NCBI GenBank assembly: GCA_025558095.1
Contig: JAIVFI010000001.1
Location: 434,001-498,000 of the forward strand
Direction of reading: 5' to 3'
DNA: 64,000 bases
Origin: Hyaloraphidium curvatum SAG 235-1
Lineage: Eukaryota; Fungi; Monoblepharomycota
Part shown: positions 13,426 to 45,091 of the stretch, one piece after another
Position numbering within the stretch: the stretch's first letter is position 1
Layout: each line of letters begins with the position of its first letter
Position numbers and translations under genes: made by a program
Notes under the pieces: generated by a model
Told to the model about the DNA's origin: nothing
The model's database searches: none
The model's input: only the letters and a program-made list of their open reading frames with translations

Positions 13426-15432
13426 TCACGCAACGTACATCATTGCAAGAAGCAGGCCGATGACGAGTGCCGGCAGAGCAAAGAGGGCGGCCGATCTCAA
13501 GGCCTTCGCCCCGGAAGGCCTCCCCGGGGCAATGGTGCTCACCGCCGCCGCGCTCGTCGCCGTTGCAACCACTGCCTCGCTCGACGTCGAGCAGTCCAGG
13601 TCCGGGGCTTGTTCTCCGCTGAGCACCCTGACCGCCCTGGCGCACCATCCGCCGGCCCGCTCCGGACACATCATTCCGTTGCTCACAATCGAAGGCGCCG
13701 GCTCCCCGGGCGCGAGCAAAGTGCAGTCGCGATCCGAGAACCATGAGCACCGGTCAGGATCCGGCCCGCGGCACTGCGCCACCCGCCCGGCTCCCCGCAC
13801 GGCAACGTAGTTCCCCTTGTCCGAACAGGAGCGCATGCAGGTCCAGTCAGCCAGCTGCGGTGTCGGATAGGGCCCCGGTGGCGCAGTTGTTTGGGTTAGA
13901 AGCGAGGCGTTCTCGTATCTCCACTCTGGCCGGAACGCGAGCCCGATCCTGACACACCAAGAGTCCCTACAGGGGCAGACGCAGCCATCGTCCCAGAAAT
14001 CCAAGAACTCTACCGTGTAGCAGACATGGCCTCCTGCGGCCGCGCTCGGCGCTGGTCCCACCGCGGTCTCCCCGAGGCACGGGCCCTGGCCTGCAACGCA
14101 AGAGTCGGGCCAAGGAACCTCGGTAGTGCAGCCTGCGTCCGCGTACGCGAAGCACCTATCGCCATCCGGGCCGGCACACTGGATGGAGTCCATCTTCTTA
14201 CCATAGAACGGCTCGTTAAAGTCGACGAGCCGGACCTTCATGTACGGGCTGCACTTGACTCCGACGCAGTGCCAATCCGATAGGGGCGTAGGTGGAGGAA
14301 AGGGGGTGGTCGTGGCTGTGGTAGTGGTTGACGTGCGGGTCGGGGTCACCGGAGCCGCCAGGCCCGGGCACTCGTAGTTCGGCGGGTTGCCGCGCAGCGC
14401 GGCGTCAGCGGCGAGCTTGCACCACCCCGAGTCCGTCTGGTCGCAGGTGGCGCCACTGGTGAGGCGACCTCCGTCCTCCTTGAACAGATACTCGAATGAA
14501 GGTTTTGGCTCGCCCGGGGCAAGGACGGAAAGAGCCAAGTCGGTGTACCAGGAGCAATGCGAGCTGTCTGGCCCGTGGCAGACGACCCTGTGCCCGGCAC
14601 GCCTGATCCGGAGGTAGTTCCCGTTGTCCTCGCAGGACCGTACGGTCATCCAGGGCCCGAAAAAGGTCACGTTGCTCGAGGTCTCCGTGACGTCCAAGCA
14701 CCCTTCGGGCTTCGCGGGCTTCAAGATGTAGCTGTACACCTCACCGCACCAGCTGTAACTCTCGTTCCAGCTAATGGTGCCGTTGGTGCTGACTGCGGAG
14801 CAGTTGGCACCCCCGCCTAAGACGGGGTCCCCATTCGTCGGATGTGTACAGAATGGATCCGAGAACAGGCTGCAGGTGCCGTTCACCGGTCCCTCGCAGC
14901 GGGCGCGGTAATGCAGCTCCGGATCGTAGGCTTTCTTGCCCGTCAAAGCGGAGGCCCTGATCCAAGCGCAGCCCAGGGACGGCGCCCGGACGCACGAGCC
15001 GGTGCCATTGTACCGGCCGCACGTGAAACCCCACGGCGAGGACCGGCGAGAGAGGCGGCGGGAAGAGTAGTACGATGCAGGGCCGCCATCGCACCAGCCG
15101 ATACATTGGGAGGCCTGGAAGTTGTTGTACCGCCCTTGGTCGACGGAGCGACAGACCAGAAAGCCGGTGGCGGGGTCGATGACCTCCCTGAGCGTGAGGC
15201 CGTAGGCCGCAGCGTTCGGTACGAGGGCAAATAGAGCAACAAAACCGATTGCGGCCGCGCCAAGGCGGAGCGCGGCGGCCGGGGAGAGGGGAATCGCGGC
15301 GGCCGGAGCCCGACGGAGGGCGGCGGTCTGGGCGCCGCGGAGGGTGCCCAGCCCGGGTCGAAAACGCCGGGGGCTCTGCGGCGATATTGTGCGAGCGTCT
15401 GCAGCGGTGTCCAATGGCGTCAGCGTCGCCAT
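13426..15432 (-). CDS. Secreted/surface protein with 3-4 Cys-rich repeats, Thr linker and hydrophobic C-terminal anchor
   Basis: Hydrophobic leader IGFVALFALVPNAAA; repeats of the form W..RSC.D.GNY..IR.AG..V.C.GPD...CSW..D..C..LAPGEP.PS...GWC; C-terminal ALFALPALVIGLLLAMMYVA (GPI/TM-like). Confidence 0.8.
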   Translation of the reverse strand: MATLTPLDTAADARTISPQSPRRFRPGLGTLRGAQTAALRRAPAAAIPLSPAAALRLGAAAIGFVALFALVPNAAAYGLTLREVIDPATGFLVCRSVDQGRYNNFQASQCIGWCDGGPASYYSSRRLSRRSSPWGFTCGRYNGTGSCVRAPSLGCAWIRASALTGKKAYDPELHYRARCEGPVNGTCSLFSDPFCTHPTNGDPVLGGGANCSAVSTNGTISWNESYSWCGEVYSYILKPAKPEGCLDVTETSSNVTFFGPWMTVRSCEDNGNYLRIRRAGHRVVCHGPDSSHCSWYTDLALSVLAPGEPKPSFEYLFKEDGGRLTSGATCDQTDSGWCKLAADAALRGNPPNYECPGLAAPVTPTRTSTTTTATTTPFPPPTPLSDWHCVGVKCSPYMKVRLVDFNEPFYGKKMDSIQCAGPDGDRCFAYADAGCTTEVPWPDSCVAGQGPCLGETAVGPAPSAAAGGHVCYTVEFLDFWDDGCVCPCRDSWCVRIGLAFRPEWRYENASLLTQTTAPPGPYPTPQLADWTCMRSCSDKGNYVAVRGAGRVAQCRGPDPDRCSWFSDRDCTLLAPGEPAPSIVSNGMMCPERAGGWCARAVRVLSGEQAPDLDCSTSSEAVVATATSAAAVSTIAPGRPSGAKALRSAALFALPALVIGLLLAMMYVA

Positions 15433-15489: not shown

Positions 15490-15610
15490 GTCGGGCTGCC
15501 GAGGCGCACCGGGCACGTGCCGCCCCTGCTCTTGGATCTCCGCCGCTGTTGGGCCCTCGGGCCGGCCCTGTCTGCCTTGGGGTGCACTGTTTCAGCGCAC
15601 GCAGACAGGA
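15490..15610 (+). repeat. Dispersed non-coding repeat, copy 1 (family A)
   Basis: gtcgggctgccgaggcgcaccgg...ccctgctc...ttggggtgcactgtttcagcgcacgcaga aligns with 27406-27537. Confidence 0.65.
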
Positions 15611-15662
15611 GCGACCACACGGTGCGTCCCTGTCGACCATTCGGCGAGAATGCCAGTCAAGT

Positions 15663-15725
15663 GGGTGAGACAGCAATCTAATTGGAACAATCAAATGGGT
15701 GACAGAGCAATCTAATTGGAACAAT
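15663..15725. repeat. Short tandem duplication (~30 bp x2)
   Basis: gggtga...gcaatctaattggaacaat occurs twice in succession, just downstream of the helicase-PHD stop. Confidence 0.8.
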
Positions 15726-15737
15726 GACAAGCTTCTT

Positions 15738-18700
15738 CTAGCGGCAGGACCTCTTGTTCTTGGCGCACGAGCTGCACACAAAGTCGCCCTGCGAGGCATC
15801 GTGGCCCTCGGCGCAGCAGGCGGCATGCACGACGGTATCGCAGCGCATGCACTCGACAAAGTCGTCGGCGTCCCGGTCCAGCGCCTCCTCGCAGTCGCAG
15901 CGGATGCGCAGCCAGTTCGTGACGTTCCAGGCCAGGCCGATGCAGAGCTCGCTCTCGTCGCCCTCGTCGCGGAAGGCGATGGTGATCGGGGCGATCGGCA
16001 CGCCGGGGGCGCGGATTTCGCGCAGGCTGCGGAGCTCGACCAGGTCGGGGTACAGCCTCCTGCGCGCGATCTCCGTCAGGCGGTCGACCATGTCGTCAAA
16101 AACCTGGCGGGCCGTGTTGAAGACCTCGTCCTTGGTGTTCTTGTCGATGACCGCCACCAGGGCATCGGGGTCGATCTGCGCGGAGGAGGCGTCAGGTAGC
16201 TGTGTGCACGGTACCAAATCCGGCATACCTTGAAGCGCTCGCTGCTGGTGGCGGTGATCTTCTCCCAGAGGTCCTTGAAATCGACGTCGTCGGACGGTTC
16301 GTCCTCGAGGGAGCAGAACGCGGACTCGTAGTAGATGAAGCCGAGCATCTTGAGGAGCATGTCCCGCTCCCAAACCTCGAACTCGGGAAGCAAGGCGTCC
16401 TTGAAGGGCTTGAGCAGCTCCGGCCTCTTGATCGGCGACCACCCCAGGAGGCCGAGGTTCGCGCGGGCCTGGCGGAGCTTGGGGTACACGGCCTGCTCCG
16501 GGAACGGCCCGCGAGCGGCGCGCCCGATTGTGAGGTAGGGCGACTCGTCGAGGCGGCGCTTGATGCGCTTGGTCAGGTCCTCGTTGAACTCGAGGACCTC
16601 CTTGATGTACGCTGCGCAGGCGTCGTCCAAGGCTACCAGCACTGGCATGCGGCCGGGCAGGCCGCTCATGTGGTGGCCGGCGATGCGGCCGACCCCCTGG
16701 TAAACGTCGACCATGACCTTGCGCTTGAGCTGGACGATGTCGGACTTGGCCAAGAGGATCGTGGGCGCCAGGTCGTGCCAGAACGTCTTGAGAGTCAGCC
16801 CCTCCTTCATGAGCCTGTGGTGTAGGGCGGTCAGAATGAGTGTCTTGCGGCGAGTGGCACCCGGTTGAGGTCAACTTACTTGTCGCCGATGGTGACGACC
16901 AAGAGGTCCGAGATGTCGGCCCTCGCGGCCTCGAAGGCGGCGTAAATGATCGACAGCGCACCGCGCACGCGGTACAGCAGCCCCTTGGGGAGGCAGATCT
17001 CGTGCTCGTCGTCCGAAACGTGCCAGTCCGAGCCCATGCGTTCCGGGGTCATGGTCTTTTTGCTGAGGATCAGGAACTTCCCCTCGCGGTGCGGGTGGGG
17101 CACCCAGGTCCCGTTGTGGGGCTGGATGGCGCCGTACTTGTCGGGGTAGAGCCGCTTGAGCTCCTGCAGCTGGGCCGGGCTGATGAAGACATCCTGCTCG
17201 CCGGGCAGCAGGTAGCGGCCGACGATCGCAACCGCGGCCTTGTTCAGGAAGATGGACGGGCCGCGTGCGCCCAGGGAGGCGTAGCCCGTGAGGGCCACGA
17301 CGGGGCGCTCGGCCTCGAGGGTGTTGAAAGCAACAGAAAGGGCGAGGTCGTGGAGCTCGCTGTTGTTCTTGAAGCCGCCCAGCACGACGACGTGTTCGGG
17401 CTGCCCGGTCCGCACGGGGACCAAGGCATTCACGAAGTCAAGCACGATGCTCCTCTGCGGCGCGTCGGGCGAGATGTGCGACGTGTCCAGGCCGGCGATC
17501 CGCGTGCCGGCGTCCGCGAGCGAAACAATGGGGATGCGGTTCTCGGGCGAGACGCTCTCGGTGAGGCCAAAGTAGGTAGATTTGAGGTCCATGAAGATCA
17601 TCTGGGCCGACCTGTCGGAATTGCACACGACCGAAGGCGCGTGCGTGGCCGACACCTCGACGAACATCCCCACGGCGTCGATCAGCTGGGGGTTCAGGTT
17701 GAGGGCCAGGGTGCAGTCGAAGCCGTTGTGGAAGAGCCACTTGCTCGCCGCGGGCTGGAGGCAGTGGCGCAGCTGGTGGCTCTGGACCTTGAGGGCCTCC
17801 TCGATGCGGAGGCGGCAGTCGGGGGTCTTGTTGATGTTCTGGCTCTCGTCGACGAACATGACCACGTTGGCGCGGGCACCCTCGCGCCACACGCCGTAGT
17901 GCTCGACGATGGCGGGGAGGTCCTTCTCGATGGCGCTGCGCACGTTCTGCGCCGTGGCCAGGCGGCATCGTATGAGCGGGCGCAAGAAGGGGCGGTTGTT
18001 GCGCAGGCAGATGAGCTTGGAGGGAAAGTCCTCCCTCTCCTGGAGCGTCGAGAGCTCGAAGAGGTACTCGTCGACGTCGCACTGGATGTCGTTGGCCTTG
18101 ATGAAGGAGCGGATCTTGTCGTTGAAGGAGCGGAGCGAGTGCTGCATGTCGGAGTAGCTGGTGGCGTCGTTGCGGAGAAACATGTACGGGAACAGGCCGT
18201 GGCGGAAGAAAGACACATAGGCCAAGGCAATCATCTCGGCGGTCTTGCCCAGCTGGCACTGCCCGACGAGGTGCAGCATCGCACGCTCGTCCGGGTAGGA
18301 GAGCTGGCCGGCCTTGGAGTGCAGGAGGTTGGCGATGCACTCGTCGACGATCCTGTCCACGACGGCCTTCTTGAGGTTCCTGCGGTAGCGGTTGCGGGCG
18401 GCGTCGTATAGCTCCTGCGACGGGGGGCCGCCGAGGATGTCGCTGCCCTCGTCGCTGTCGTCCTTGATCTCGATGGGGTCCGTCGGCTGGCTGGCGCCCT
18501 CGTCGGCCGACGCCTGCGAGAAGGTCGCCCTGGTCGCCTGGATCGCGGCCAGGATGCGGTACGACTGCAGGCCCGAGCCAACGTCTGCGGCCAGGGGCAC
18601 TGCCAGATCGCCCGCGGCCAGGCTGCCGAGGAGCCAGGGGCCCGGGGGCAGCTCAAAGGCCGGGGCGCCCTTGAAGGCCTCGGCGCAGGCGCCAAAGAGC

Positions 18701-19118
18701 CCGGGGGCGCCGTCCGACAGGTCGGCGGCGATCAGGCCTTCGTTCTCGGCGGCAAAGTCGGCGAGCTTGGCGACGAGCGTGTCGATCTTGTCGGCGTCCC
18801 AGAAGACGGCGGCCTGGCGGAGCACCTGCGGAGGCAAGGTCAGCACGTTGCGGCTGCGGCACAAGGCAAGCCAGCTCACCTTGACGGCTTCGTTGACGCG
18901 CTGGGAATGCACCAGCAGCACGGGCTTGAGCATGCCGGCGGCGGCATCCGTCCCCACGAGCGCGGGCACGAAACCGGAGCCGAGCGCGGCCAGCGACTCG
19001 GGCGAGAGCGGCGCGGGTTTCATGCGGCCCTGGGGAGCCCATCAGCGCGATGCGGCGGCGCGGAAAATGCGGGGCATACCTGGACGGCGGCGGCGGAGGG
19101 GATGCCGGCGGCGGGCAT
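15738..19118 (-). CDS. Z1-type SF2 helicase/ATPase fused to a C-terminal PHD finger (~1070 aa, 4 exons)
   Basis: Exons 19118-19080, 19029-16880, 16814-16229 and 16175-15738 (GT-AG introns) form a continuous frame. Motifs: GQCQLGKT, MFVDESQ, VSAT, IGDKLMKEGLT, DVYQGVGRIAG. C-terminal C-x-C...CxxC-xxxx-H-xx-C...CxxC (IRCDCEE...ECMRCDTVVHAACC...FVCSSC). Confidence 0.8.
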
Positions 19119-19659
19119 GGTCGGTCGCTGCGGGGAGGGCGGGAGGGTCAGATCATGCCGACCACGGTCCGGGGCGGCCGGCGCGCACGGGAGCGCTCGG
19201 CGGCGAACCTACACGGCTGCTATCGGCGGCTGGGAGGGGCGGAACGCTAGCGGCGGCGGCGCAGCTGTTGTCCGAGTCCGAGTTGATAGCCTCTCAGAGG
19301 TCGGTCCCCGGCGTTTTGATCGATGATCGAAAGTCGAAGTCGACCACCGGCGGCGAGTCGGCCAACCAATCCAATCCAATCCAATCCCCCGCCCAGACGA
19401 CCAATCAGTTGCAGAGCTTGGAATCATCGGAATCGGCTATCCGTGGCGTTCATCGGGTCGCCAGATCGATCCCCTGGACAACGTCCATCAGGTTGCTTGT
19501 CCGGAAGGCACGCGAGGTTACTACCTTGGCCCGGATTGCTCCCGCCCGGATTGCTCCACATTCCTTGGCCGTGGGCTTCGCTAGCTGAGCAGAGGTCCAT
19601 CTTCCCAGTCCCTGCGTCCGGTTTCCGCTCGCGGGGACGGTCCATCCCAGGTCGTTCCG

Positions 19660-43229: not shown

Positions 43230-45091
43230 ATGGAGGCGCACCCGCCGCCCGTCACCGACGCCGACGCCGCGGCGCCGGGACCGGGGCTGTCGCGGACGGC
43301 CAAGGTGCTGGCGGTGGTGTCGCTTTCTCTCGGAATCTTGCTCTTCTCGCTCGAGGCAACAGGTTCGTGAGCACCCTCCTGCAAAGAAACACCTCTCTGA
43401 AATGCCTTCTAGTCGTCTCGGTGGCGATCCCGGCCATCGTCAAGGACCTCGGCGGCGAGTCGCTGCTCGCGTGGATCGGCACCTCGTACATCCTCGCAGC
43501 GACGGCCGTCGGCCCGCTGTGGGGCAAATTCGGCGACATCTTCGGCCGCAAGAACCTGCTCATTTTCAACACCGTCGTGTTCATCCTCGCCTCGGTCATG
43601 TGCGCCCTCGCGCCCTCGATGGTCGTGCTCATCGTCGGCCGCGGGTTCCAGGGCGTCGGCGGCGGCGGGCTGCAGGCGCTGGTCTACGTGATGGTGTCCG
43701 AGGTCGTCACGCTCAGGGAGCGCGGCACCTACACCGCCATCATGGGCGCCATCGCTGGCGCGGGCGCCATGGTCGGCCCGCTCGTCGGCGGCGTGATCAC
43801 GGACAACTGGAGCTGGCGTGGCGCATTCTGGATCAATCTCCCAGTGGGAGCGCTCGCACTTGCCGGGTACTTCTTCCTCCTCCCGCGGACCGCCCGCCGT
43901 AAAGCCACCTGGCGCGAGACGCTCGCCCGGGTGGACTACGGCGGCGCCATCCTCTGCGTCGCCGGCGTCGTCGGCCTGCTCCTCGGACTCACGTGGGGCG
44001 TGACCGCCGGCTGGGTGTCGGCGCAGACCCTGGTGCCCCTAATTTTGGGCGCCATCATCGTGATCGCGTTCGTGCTCTACGAGTGGAAGGTGCCGAAGGA
44101 GCCCAGCGTGCCCATGCGGCTGTTTGCGTCCGTCAACATTTCGTGCACCTACGCGGCCAACTTCTTTGTCGGGTGGATGAGCATGTCGGGCGGCTACTAC
44201 TTGGTTGGTGCCGCGACGTCGCCGCCGGCACGCCCTTCAGACCCGCTGACCCTCGCCGCCCGCCAGCCGCTGTTTTTCCAGCTCGTCCTCGGCAATACCC
44301 CCACAGCCTCGGGCCTCAAGACCATCCCCTCCATCGCCGTACTCATCCCCGTCTCGATCGTCACCGGCATTGTCTCCTCCAAGACCGGCATCTACGTGCC
44401 CTTCCCCAAGGTCGGCCTGGCCATCGCCGCGGTCGGCGTCGGCCTCATGACCACCTGGAACGCCGGCACCCCCGTCGGCGAGCAGATCGGCTACCTCTGC
44501 ATCCAGGGCTTCGGCCTGGGGCTCAGCCTCTCGATGCTCATGCTCATCGTGCAGGCCAATCTGCCGCTGGCCGACATCGGCCCGGGCACGACCGTGATGA
44601 CATTCATGTCCTCGGTCGGCGGCGTGCTGGGGATCGGCGTGGGCGGCACCATCCTCGCCAACATCGTCGCGGGGCAGCTCTCCTCCGCCGCCATCGTCTC
44701 GGCGGCGGCGGCGCTGGGAATCGACCCGGCAGTGCTTGGCGAATGCGTGCAGGCGCAGGTCAACGGGCAGCCGCTGCAACCCTCGAGCACGGTGCCCGCG
44801 TCGGCGGTGCAGGCCGCCTCGTCGATGGTCGCGGCGGCGTACGAGGCCGCGCTCAGCAAGGTGTTTTTGTCGATGGCCGTGGCGACCTGCGCGGGGTGGG
44901 TCGCCGTTATGTTCATCCGGCACGTGCCCCTGCGGACGACGATGGACTCGACCGAGATCGTCGTGGACTCGGGGAAGGACACGGACCCCGAGGCGGCGGC
45001 AAAGGAGGGGGCCGGCGGGAAGGAGGGGGACGACGAGACGGTGGTGGGCGCGGAACAGGCGGGAGAGCACCAGAAGGAAGCGTTGAGATAG
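43230..45091 (+). CDS. MFS drug:H+ antiporter (DHA2, 14-TM type)
   Basis: WIGTSYIL...PLWGKFGDIFGRK, GRGFQGVGGGG, RERG.Y, GPLVGG.I..NWSWR..FWINLP. Introns at ~43363-43412 and ~44204-44266. Confidence 0.92.

Follow-up and report, generated by a model that had tools for sequence, protein, structure and literature searches.

An expressed four-exon gene of the fungus Hyaloraphidium curvatum for a putative DEAD-Z1-like motor with a C-terminal PHD-type finger

The gene considered here lies in a stretch of 64,000 nucleotides (nt), hereafter the window, taken from contig JAIVFI010000001.1 (positions 434,001 to 498,000, forward strand; assembly GCA_025558095.1) of Hyaloraphidium curvatum SAG 235-1, an early-diverging fungus of the Monoblepharomycota, a chytrid-grade lineage, with a genome of 31.9 Mb in 55 contigs. 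On the minus strand, from 19023 to 15738 of the window, three long open frames are linked by two short GT..AG sequences with CTGAC branch sites, and, with an additional in-frame intron removed, they encode a protein of 1037 amino acids (aa; 48 + 648 + 1 split codon + 195 + 145 codons). This protein is probably an ATPase motor of superfamily 2 (SF2), related to the DEAD-Z1 motors of prokaryotes, that carries a PHD-type zinc finger at its C terminus (Table 1). The reading frame is far beyond chance, its best homologue having an E-value (E) of 5.7e-45. Profile searches of the genome found the gene in single copy, and a second paralogue in H. curvatum was accordingly rejected.

Transcripts of the locus are present in a public run (X1), the type of which is filed as 'RNA?' and which is stored as contigs that contain 81% of the sampled words of the stretch. 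When these contigs were compared with positions 15600-19300 of the window, four joints appeared, each of them GT..AG on the minus strand, which means that the X1 contigs are complementary DNA. One contig of 2652 nt spans 18516-15747 and lacks exactly introns 2 and 3; because it crosses both joints, a single RNA must contain the core of the ATPase, the joint in motif V and the exon for the PHD finger, so that the PHD exon does belong to the same gene as the core (as had been supposed) and not to a separate one. This main contig ends 7 nt short of the stop codon, i.e. the 3' end of the transcript lies outside it. A second contig lacks intron 1, and its 5' end coincides with the A of the ATG at 19023. 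The third, of 2895 nt, represents the upstream minus-strand gene: it lacks that gene's own intron (19128-19212), ends at 19085 and thereby overlaps 19118-19085, while no X1 contig covers 19024-19084. Given the contig end at 19023, the in-frame TGA upstream of it (19044-19042) and the neighbour's contig over 19118-19085, the coding sequence is taken to start at ATG 19023.

The four-exon model and its transcription are therefore nearly certain, and they modify the first-pass annotation of this DNA in two respects. That annotation had proposed three introns and an intact frame of ~1070 aa. The introns at 16815-16879 and 16176-16228 are borne out by the RNA contigs, but the one at 19079-19030 has no support and that at 18826-18879 had been overlooked; likewise, the frame is intact but shorter than thought. 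The first exon that went with the unsupported intron (19118-19080) was discarded, since the RNA assigns this stretch to the 3' end of the upstream gene.

Table 1. Coordinates of the gene, its motifs and the adjoining gene end (window positions; RNA contigs are those of run X1)
Feature	Position	Strand	Basis or remark
Coding exon 1, 48 codons, start ATG 19023-19021	18880..19023	-	Open reading frame (ORF) list; RNA contig ends at 19023 and joins 18880 to 18825
Intron 1, 54 nt, in frame, GTGAGC...CTGAC...CAG	18826..18879	-	Absent from RNA contig
Coding exon 2: N-terminal region, RecA1, most of RecA2 up to first half of motif V	16880..18825	-	Homologues E 5.7e-45 to 1e-10; hhalign to Z1 proteins
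Walker A GQCQLGKT (Q-type)	18264-18241	-	Sequence reading
Walker B MFVDESQ	17859-17839	-	Sequence reading
Motif III VSAT	17655-17644	-	Sequence reading
Motif V IGDK/LMKEGLT	16890-16880 + 16814-16793	-	Formed across intron 2
Intron 2, 65 nt, phase 2, GTAAGT..CTGAC..CAG	16815..16879	-	Splits motif V; spliced in 2652-nt RNA contig; relatives uninterrupted
Coding exon 3: second half of motif V, motif VI, helices after motif VI	16229..16814	-	hhalign of motif V-VI vs Z1 96-97%; own-genome profile match E 8.5e-10
Motif VI DVYQGVGRIAG	16708-16676	-	Sequence reading
Intron 3, 53 nt, phase 0, GTATGC..CTGAC..CAG	16176..16228	-	Spliced in 2652-nt RNA contig
Coding exon 4, 145 codons + TAG: linker and C-terminal PHD finger	15738..16175	-	ORF list; RNA contig coverage 16175-15747
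PHD-type C4HC3 zinc finger, C-x-C-x13-C-x2-C-x4-H-x2-C-x13-C-x2-C	15765..15899	-	Last 45 residues
3' end of upstream minus-strand gene, outside the Z1-like gene	19085..19127	-	2895-nt RNA contig ends at 19085; own intron 19128-19212

All of the motifs in Table 1 and the C4HC3 finger lie on the minus strand where they had been placed before, and, as far as can be read from the sequence, every catalytic motif of the SF2 motor is intact. Motif V is indeed created only by the splicing of intron 2, as had been claimed: the joint is present in the RNA contig, and in the colinear relatives (including the gene on contig L002) the motif is uninterrupted. The chain starts with a non-conserved N-terminal region of ~200 aa, followed by two RecA-like domains, a poorly conserved linker of ~250 aa and the C-terminal finger, where both the N-terminal region and the linker combine poor conservation with low model confidence. 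Scans of the exons with Pfam, NCBIfam and PADLOC returned no model over threshold, i.e. no helicase or Z1 match and no nuclease, methyltransferase or other effector domain.

For the fold, a single-sequence AlphaFold model of exon 2 was unusable (predicted local distance difference test, pLDDT, of 36), and AlphaFold2 was run instead on P0003, a natural relative without introns (31% identity over exon 2 residues 204-713), with an alignment of 14 members. The resulting model has a predicted template modelling score (pTM) of 0.66, with pLDDT mostly above 70 in the core (residues 20-660). In a Foldseek search against the PDB it gave 223 matches at E<=1e-3, and the 50 listed are all SF2 enzymes, many with a probability of 1.0, among them Pol theta/Hel308, DEAH, RIG-I, PriA, DinG and HsdR. 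VIA-align, which is independent of Foldseek, gave Z-scores of 10-13 over 320-370 residues to FANCM, DinG, RecG, INO80, SNF2h, EcoP15I Res and LlaBIII. With tandem RecA-like domains and motifs I, II, III, V and VI all present, the core is predicted to be a two-RecA SF2 motor, in agreement with the earlier assignment to the SF2 ATPases.

Relatives of this protein are very rare. Homology searches with the window gene used the separate exon translations as queries, and an exhaustive phmmer search of 1.84 billion representatives returned only 27 relatives at E<=1e-3, the best of them at 35-38% identity. A word-indexed search found no match with exon 2 as query and only four family members with the family alignment, while neither exon 2 nor the family profile had a match among the PDB sequences. 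Back-translated pattern scans of IMG/VR and JGI metagenomes confirmed no relative, and tblastn of a relative against plasmids gave no match. The relatives from named species stem from transcriptomes of Choanoeca perplexa, a choanoflagellate, and Rhodomonas abbreviata, a cryptophyte, and the others from metagenomes and Logan assemblies; two of the contigs that bear them are clearly eukaryotic, one containing an intron-split N-myristoyltransferase (NMT) gene and the other a histone gene. Full-length relatives measure 720-1220 aa and have colinear motifs (xxxQxGK[ST], DE[AS][QH], [VI][ST]AT, D-Y-x-G, [IV]GxxL[ILM][KR]EG[LVI]T and Qxx[GS]R[IL]xG). The combination of ATPase and finger also occurs in relatives from other eukaryotes, and the fusion is therefore no local invention of H. 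curvatum. A full-text literature search on the Z1 domain, DEAD-Z1 and PF10593 yielded prokaryotic work only and no description of such a protein, which agrees with the earlier statement that no fungal protein of this architecture had been described. This is, in short, a very rare family, scattered among protists and without an earlier description.

Some members of the family show peculiarities of their own. On two environmental contigs, neighbouring paralogue pairs are found (L003:707-6585 and L170:9001-16348): the former consists of divergent genes for 946 and 889 aa, the latter (37.7% GC) of two convergent genes, in each of which RecA1 and RecA2 are encoded by separate ORFs. Such pairs hint at heteromeric motors or local duplication, compared to the one copy in the H. 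curvatum genome. P0027, a relative of 1201 aa from a JGI metagenome, is extended at its N terminus, and in this extension residues ~230-420 contain H-x-D ... H ... R-x-S, reminiscent of 2-oxoglutarate- and Fe(II)-dependent dioxygenases. This stretch had no PDB sequence match, and no such Pfam family was among those listed for the members; a genuine domain of this kind would connect the motor with the modification of nucleic acids.

The prototype of the DEAD-Z1 motors is the H subunit of CglI, an ATP-driven translocase on double-stranded DNA whose ATPase requires Walker A and motif VI, and the Gln-containing Walker A (GxxQxGKT) of DEAD-Z1 is unusual among SF1/SF2 enzymes (Toliusis et al. 2018, PMC5861437). 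For comparison with the family, 702 genomes (351 of Bacillota and 351 of Actinomycetota) supplied 26 genuine Z1 genes, and five bacterial genomes a control set of 56 SF2 genes of other kinds (Helicase_C, ResIII). Z1 genes were present in 14 of the 351 sampled Bacillota and 10 of the 351 sampled Actinomycetota genomes (loci L126-L139 and L205-L216), with three copies in one actinobacterial genome; they occur in a long form (870-1020 aa, with QMGRWFG) and a short one (620-820 aa, with QRARWFG or none).

In profile-profile comparison (hhalign), the family matched 11 Bacillota Z1 proteins with a probability of 96.3% (E 1.7e-9) over 95 columns, running from motif V to VI and the following helix, and all 26 Z1 proteins with 96.9% (E 1.5e-10) over 90 columns. 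At a looser alignment threshold the same match, at the same probability and E, extended colinearly over 480 columns and paired the Walker A (GKT), DE, TAT and Y-x-G motifs of the family with those of Z1. Taken separately, the RecA1 half matched the Z1 proteins at 95.2% (E 2.8e-8, 202 columns) and the RecA2 half at 79-87% (E 1.6e-5 to 4.4e-6, 90 columns). The best other SF2 group reached 92.6% (E 4.4e-7) with RecA1, this being a DEAD-box-like match of 25 columns that covers Walker A only, and at most 2.8% with RecA2; the control against a reversed Z1 alignment gave 0%. Both halves are thus closer to Z1-bearing proteins than to other SF2 groups. The Walker A form xxxQxGK[ST] was present in 26/26 Z1 proteins and in 21/21 family members covering the region, versus 0/56 of the control proteins, and the neighbours in the ESM Atlas include PF10593 clusters (0.90 by features; by structure a TM-score of 0.51 over 575 residues). 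Following these results, it is very probable that the motor combines an SF2 fold with a Z1-like affinity, and we conclude from the sequence comparisons that the family is a distant eukaryotic sister of the DEAD-Z1 motors, outside Pfam Z1. Of the original Z1-type assignment, the closeness to prokaryotic Z1 proteins in both halves (by hhalign, Q-type Walker A and predicted-structure neighbours) was upheld, but membership of the Pfam family was not, and neither was a motif VI of the Z1 type.

The C-terminal finger has, with comparable confidence, a PHD-type identity, as the first-pass annotation also had it: it shows the ligand pattern, it lies on the same transcript as the core, and the profile of the family's fingers matches known PHD fingers. 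The eight Cys/His ligands are invariant in five fingers of the family (those of the window, P0003, P0007, P0026 and the L002 gene), and a degenerate finger is found at the end of the Rhodomonas protein. A profile of the five intact fingers matched 168 PDB sequences at E<=1, and the 60 listed are all PHD-finger proteins, with PHF1 (E 1.9e-7) and SHPRH (E 2.1e-7) as best matches; the window finger alone reached E 0.05-1 against PDB sequences. From its distribution in the sequences, the finger is an old feature of one subgroup of the family and not a local fusion.

Taken together, the explanation that best accounts for the data, and which is probably correct, is an expressed four-exon gene for a DEAD-Z1-like motor with a C-terminal PHD-type finger, sister to the prokaryotic DEAD-Z1 motors. 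Its Z1-like affinity and architecture are solid; its origin, including the earlier idea of a prokaryotic or viral translocase that was domesticated and gained introns, and a function in chromatin or defence are hypotheses.

A number of observations weigh against this explanation. Pfam Z1 (PF10593, cut-off 25 bits) matches neither the exons nor, at E<=10, the six-frame genome or 14 relatives, and since the relatives with an uninterrupted motif V miss it as well, the splitting of that motif by an intron is no explanation. Conversely, a family hidden Markov model (HMM) found no Z1 gene in five Z1-bearing bacterial genomes, and a local HMM-to-sequence ranking gave a weak enrichment of Z1, partly mixed with other SF2 proteins. 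Motif VI is QGVGR in the window protein and Qxx[GSKN]R in the family, i.e. the canonical QxxxR, versus QxxR in Z1 (QMGRWFG, QRARWFG), which requires a one-residue gap in the hhalign alignment, and after motif VI the window protein has His where most relatives have Arg. The 'H/H' motif of Z1, located where the helical insertion of RecA2 begins, does not seem to be conserved: in the relaxed alignment a His of the family pairs with the first His of HxSMLIHxS and the next is Tyr or Gly, in a region of low alignment confidence. As for structure, the fold was predicted for a relative of 31% identity rather than for the window protein, the matches to solved structures form a flat list across SF2 clades in which no subfamily is prominent, and of the DEAD-Z1 motors only the C-terminal domain of H.CglI has been solved (PMC5861437). 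As regards the finger, its score with Pfam PHD (PF00628) is E 0.0017 and 18.8 bits, under the cut-off of 24, and only ~6 of ~15 longer relatives keep it. Moreover, H3K4me3 readers are defined by an aromatic cage, consisting of an aromatic residue before the first Cys and a Trp two residues before the His, positions at which the window finger has Arg and Val-Val; the finger of the L002 relative does have a canonical F-W-Y-H cage.

The missing aromatic cage bears on the earlier claim of a histone reader, which was overstated, and also on a different reading, in which the account of the motor holds while the finger, instead of reading histones, could serve as a structural zinc module or bind a partner, DNA or RNA; the substrate of the enzyme might then be RNA, or DNA outside chromatin. 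Val in place of the Trp of H3K4me3 readers and Arg before the first Cys are consistent with this, as are the score under the Pfam cut-off, the match of one relative's finger to C1_1 as well, the many fingerless relatives (including all three choanoflagellate-type sequences) and the many RNA helicases among the matches to the SF2 fold. However, the listed PDB matches of the finger profile, PHD proteins without exception, include many readers of histone H3 (PHF2, PHF13, BPTF, TAF3 and KDM5B), the acidic residues ahead of the third Cys can be aligned with KDM5B PHD1 and are similar to those of readers of unmodified H3, and the sole characterised DEAD-Z1 motor moves on double-stranded DNA (PMC5861437). 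A finger that does not bind histones seems unlikely.

Similarly unlikely, in our judgement, is an origin of the gene, or of the eukaryotic family as a whole, from nucleocytoplasmic large DNA viruses (NCLDV). Its nearest kin would then be uncharacterised SF2 proteins of giant viruses, and instead of remodelling chromatin in the ordinary way it would take part in virus-host conflict or be a domesticated viral factor for replication or transcription. The closest predicted structures are indeed those of giant-virus proteins: the best structural neighbours in the ESM Atlas are NCLDV-only clusters (TM-scores of 0.77 and 0.75 by the smaller partner), the top feature match there is an NCLDV cluster too, and the best Foldseek matches in BFVD are uncharacterised proteins of Heterosigma akashiwo virus 01 (A0A1C9C5C9, for example; best E 2.5e-10), a Mimivirus relative, CeV-01B and Pyramimonas orientalis virus. 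Further NCLDV proteins found by structure are A0A1X9VNN5 and A0A0N9QIR2. The extremely patchy distribution of the family and the dense, intron-poor paralogue pairs on the two environmental contigs would also fit. On the other hand, these viral proteins are smaller (370-680 aa), have no reported finger and no sequence-level link to the family, and their models are only 10-12% identical, which is no closer than Z1. The IMG/VR viral contigs contain no relative detectable by tblastn, the window gene has three spliced introns, the GC content of its surroundings, a single copy and ordinary fungal neighbours (MFS transporter, Forkhead, WW, GT61), and relatives are found on eukaryotic contigs beside NMT and histone genes. 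A viral link of the family is possible, as far as predicted structures go, with transfer in either direction.

It is improbable that the gene mainly yields a truncated protein or a transcript without function, with the bulk of the RNA starting inside exon 2 near 18516 and lacking the codons of the N-terminal ~170 residues. The contig depth in X1 is 31 for 18516-15747 compared to 2.5-3.7 for 18495-19023, but this depth is a single figure per contig, from which neither starts nor levels can be read. The next in-frame Met is situated just 7 residues before Walker A, so that the conserved pre-Walker A helices of all relatives would be lost, and the low-depth contigs do reach the 5' part, with intron 1 spliced out. 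The depth step near 18516 could reflect an internal transcription start or an assembly artefact.

Finally, it is highly improbable that the protein belongs, in divergent form, to one of the ordinary SF2 families of eukaryotes (SNF2/Rad54, DEAD/DEAH-box or Strawberry notch) and has only a generic resemblance to Z1, since the ties of INO80, SNF2h, CHD1/4, Rad54 and DEAH helicases with restriction-type motors in Foldseek and VIA-align, and a DEAD-box profile at 92.7% hhalign probability against the family, are outweighed by the confinement of that DEAD-box match to RecA1 (or to the Walker A columns when the halves are taken apart), by the lack of a comparable non-Z1 match to RecA2 and of the Q-type Walker A among the control SF2 proteins, and by Pfam, where SNF2-rel_dom, Helicase_C, DEAD, AAA_34 and Helicase_C_4 are unlisted even at E<=10 for the exons and 14 relatives and only ResIII appears (E 0.034, one relative). 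Membership of the SNF2, DEAD-box and Strawberry notch families, from which the core had already been set apart at first reading, is largely refuted by these Pfam scans and by the hhalign comparison of the halves.

If the gene does encode a DEAD-Z1-like motor with a PHD-type finger, it may function as a chromatin-tethered DNA translocase, a plausible but tentative proposal that is built on analogy. The finger would dock the protein on chromatin, probably on the histone H3 tail and probably not on H3K4me3, going by what PHD fingers do elsewhere, after which the motor would hydrolyse ATP to move along or reorganise duplex DNA, as CglI does (PMC5861437). Any cutting or silencing would need a partner, because no nuclease domain is detectable in the chain.

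The analogy is closest with the CglI H subunit and the NgoAVII N protein. These have in common with the family two RecA-like domains, a GxxQxGKT Walker A, a DE Walker B, a motif III of TAT/SAT followed by Y-x-G, a motif V of the form [IV]GxxLxxG[LV]T and a motif VI (Q..R..G) followed by a conserved helix, besides giving the best profile-profile match in both halves. They differ in that motif VI of the family is one residue longer, H/H does not seem to be conserved and the Pfam Z1 model leaves the family unscored, while a CglI-type C-terminal domain is undetected here and its place is taken by the long linker and the PHD finger. In addition, the H. curvatum gene is a solitary, intron-bearing eukaryotic gene with no adjoining nuclease or methyltransferase gene, whereas DEAD-Z1 motors act together with a nuclease and a methyltransferase whose genes lie next to theirs. 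The PF10593 proteins of prokaryotic restriction-modification and MORC-type loci are of similar size (620-1020 aa), have the same order of a DEAD-like N domain followed by Z1, and share predicted-structure neighbours (TM-scores of 0.42-0.51 over 450-575 residues), but identity is ~13% and at genome scale there is no HMMER-level match in either direction, apart from the H. curvatum protein being eukaryotic and fused to a PHD finger. With respect to architecture, CHD3/4/5 (Mi-2) and SHPRH are comparable, as they also combine an SF2 ATPase with a PHD zinc finger, and that of SHPRH is among the best finger matches. Their motors, however, are of the SNF2 type (SNF2-rel_dom + Helicase_C), which the H. 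curvatum protein does not match, and their PHD finger is located N-terminal to or inside the motor instead of at the extreme C terminus.

To our knowledge, DEAD-Z1 motors are known only from prokaryotic restriction systems, with CglI as the single enzyme studied. With the present gene, DEAD-Z1 would have an expressed sister lineage among eukaryotes, one subgroup of which bears a fused PHD finger. This makes it a candidate for a new class of chromatin-directed DNA motor outside the SNF2 family and a further case for the debate on prokaryotic conflict systems re-used in eukaryotic chromatin biology, as proposed for MORC. A more far-reaching possibility, and a rather improbable one, is that the protein descends from a restriction-type defence motor in which the sequence-reading nuclease partner was exchanged for a histone reader sensing the state of chromatin (e.g. 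unmarked or foreign, giant-virus or transposon DNA), whereupon the translocase would track along such DNA and recruit or activate an effector. If true, it would be a chromatin-based analogue of methylation-based self/non-self discrimination that survives only in a single early-diverging fungus and some protists. With 27 representative clusters, the family is very small, and it is unannotated, such that automated annotation would give 'hypothetical protein', and its practical value is modest until an activity has been measured.

G+C content is 62-75% across the window, in which the gene is indistinguishable from its surroundings, and the neighbouring genes have WW, Forkhead, zf-MYND, GT61 and MFS/TRI12 domains. 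The two immediate neighbours, i.e. a Cys-rich protein and the upstream minus-strand gene, are both unrelated to the motor. The upstream gene ends at ~19085, only ~60 nt from ATG 19023, and has an intron of 85 nt. In the 3' flank, just past the stop codon, a ~30-nt unit (TTGTTCCAATTAGATTGCT...CACCCA.TTGA) occurs twice at 15660-15735, as nearly identical direct copies ~36 nt apart, which lie beyond the end of the RNA contig. The downstream neighbour (13426-15432, minus strand) is an intron-less ORF of 668 aa, Cys-rich and with internally repeated Cys/Trp modules; its N terminus has a hydrophobic segment and its C terminus a hydrophobic tail. In appearance it resembles a repeat protein that is secreted or anchored, and it has no Pfam match. 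Further away, on the plus strand, ORF 43367-45088 encodes an MFS/DHA2 (TRI12-like) transporter that has 96% identity to an NCBI protein of H. curvatum and of which the nearest non-self relatives are three H. curvatum paralogues, then Basidiobolus, followed by many actinobacterial EmrB/QacA transporters at 33-37% identity. It possibly represents an old bacterial-type efflux family that has expanded in H. curvatum.

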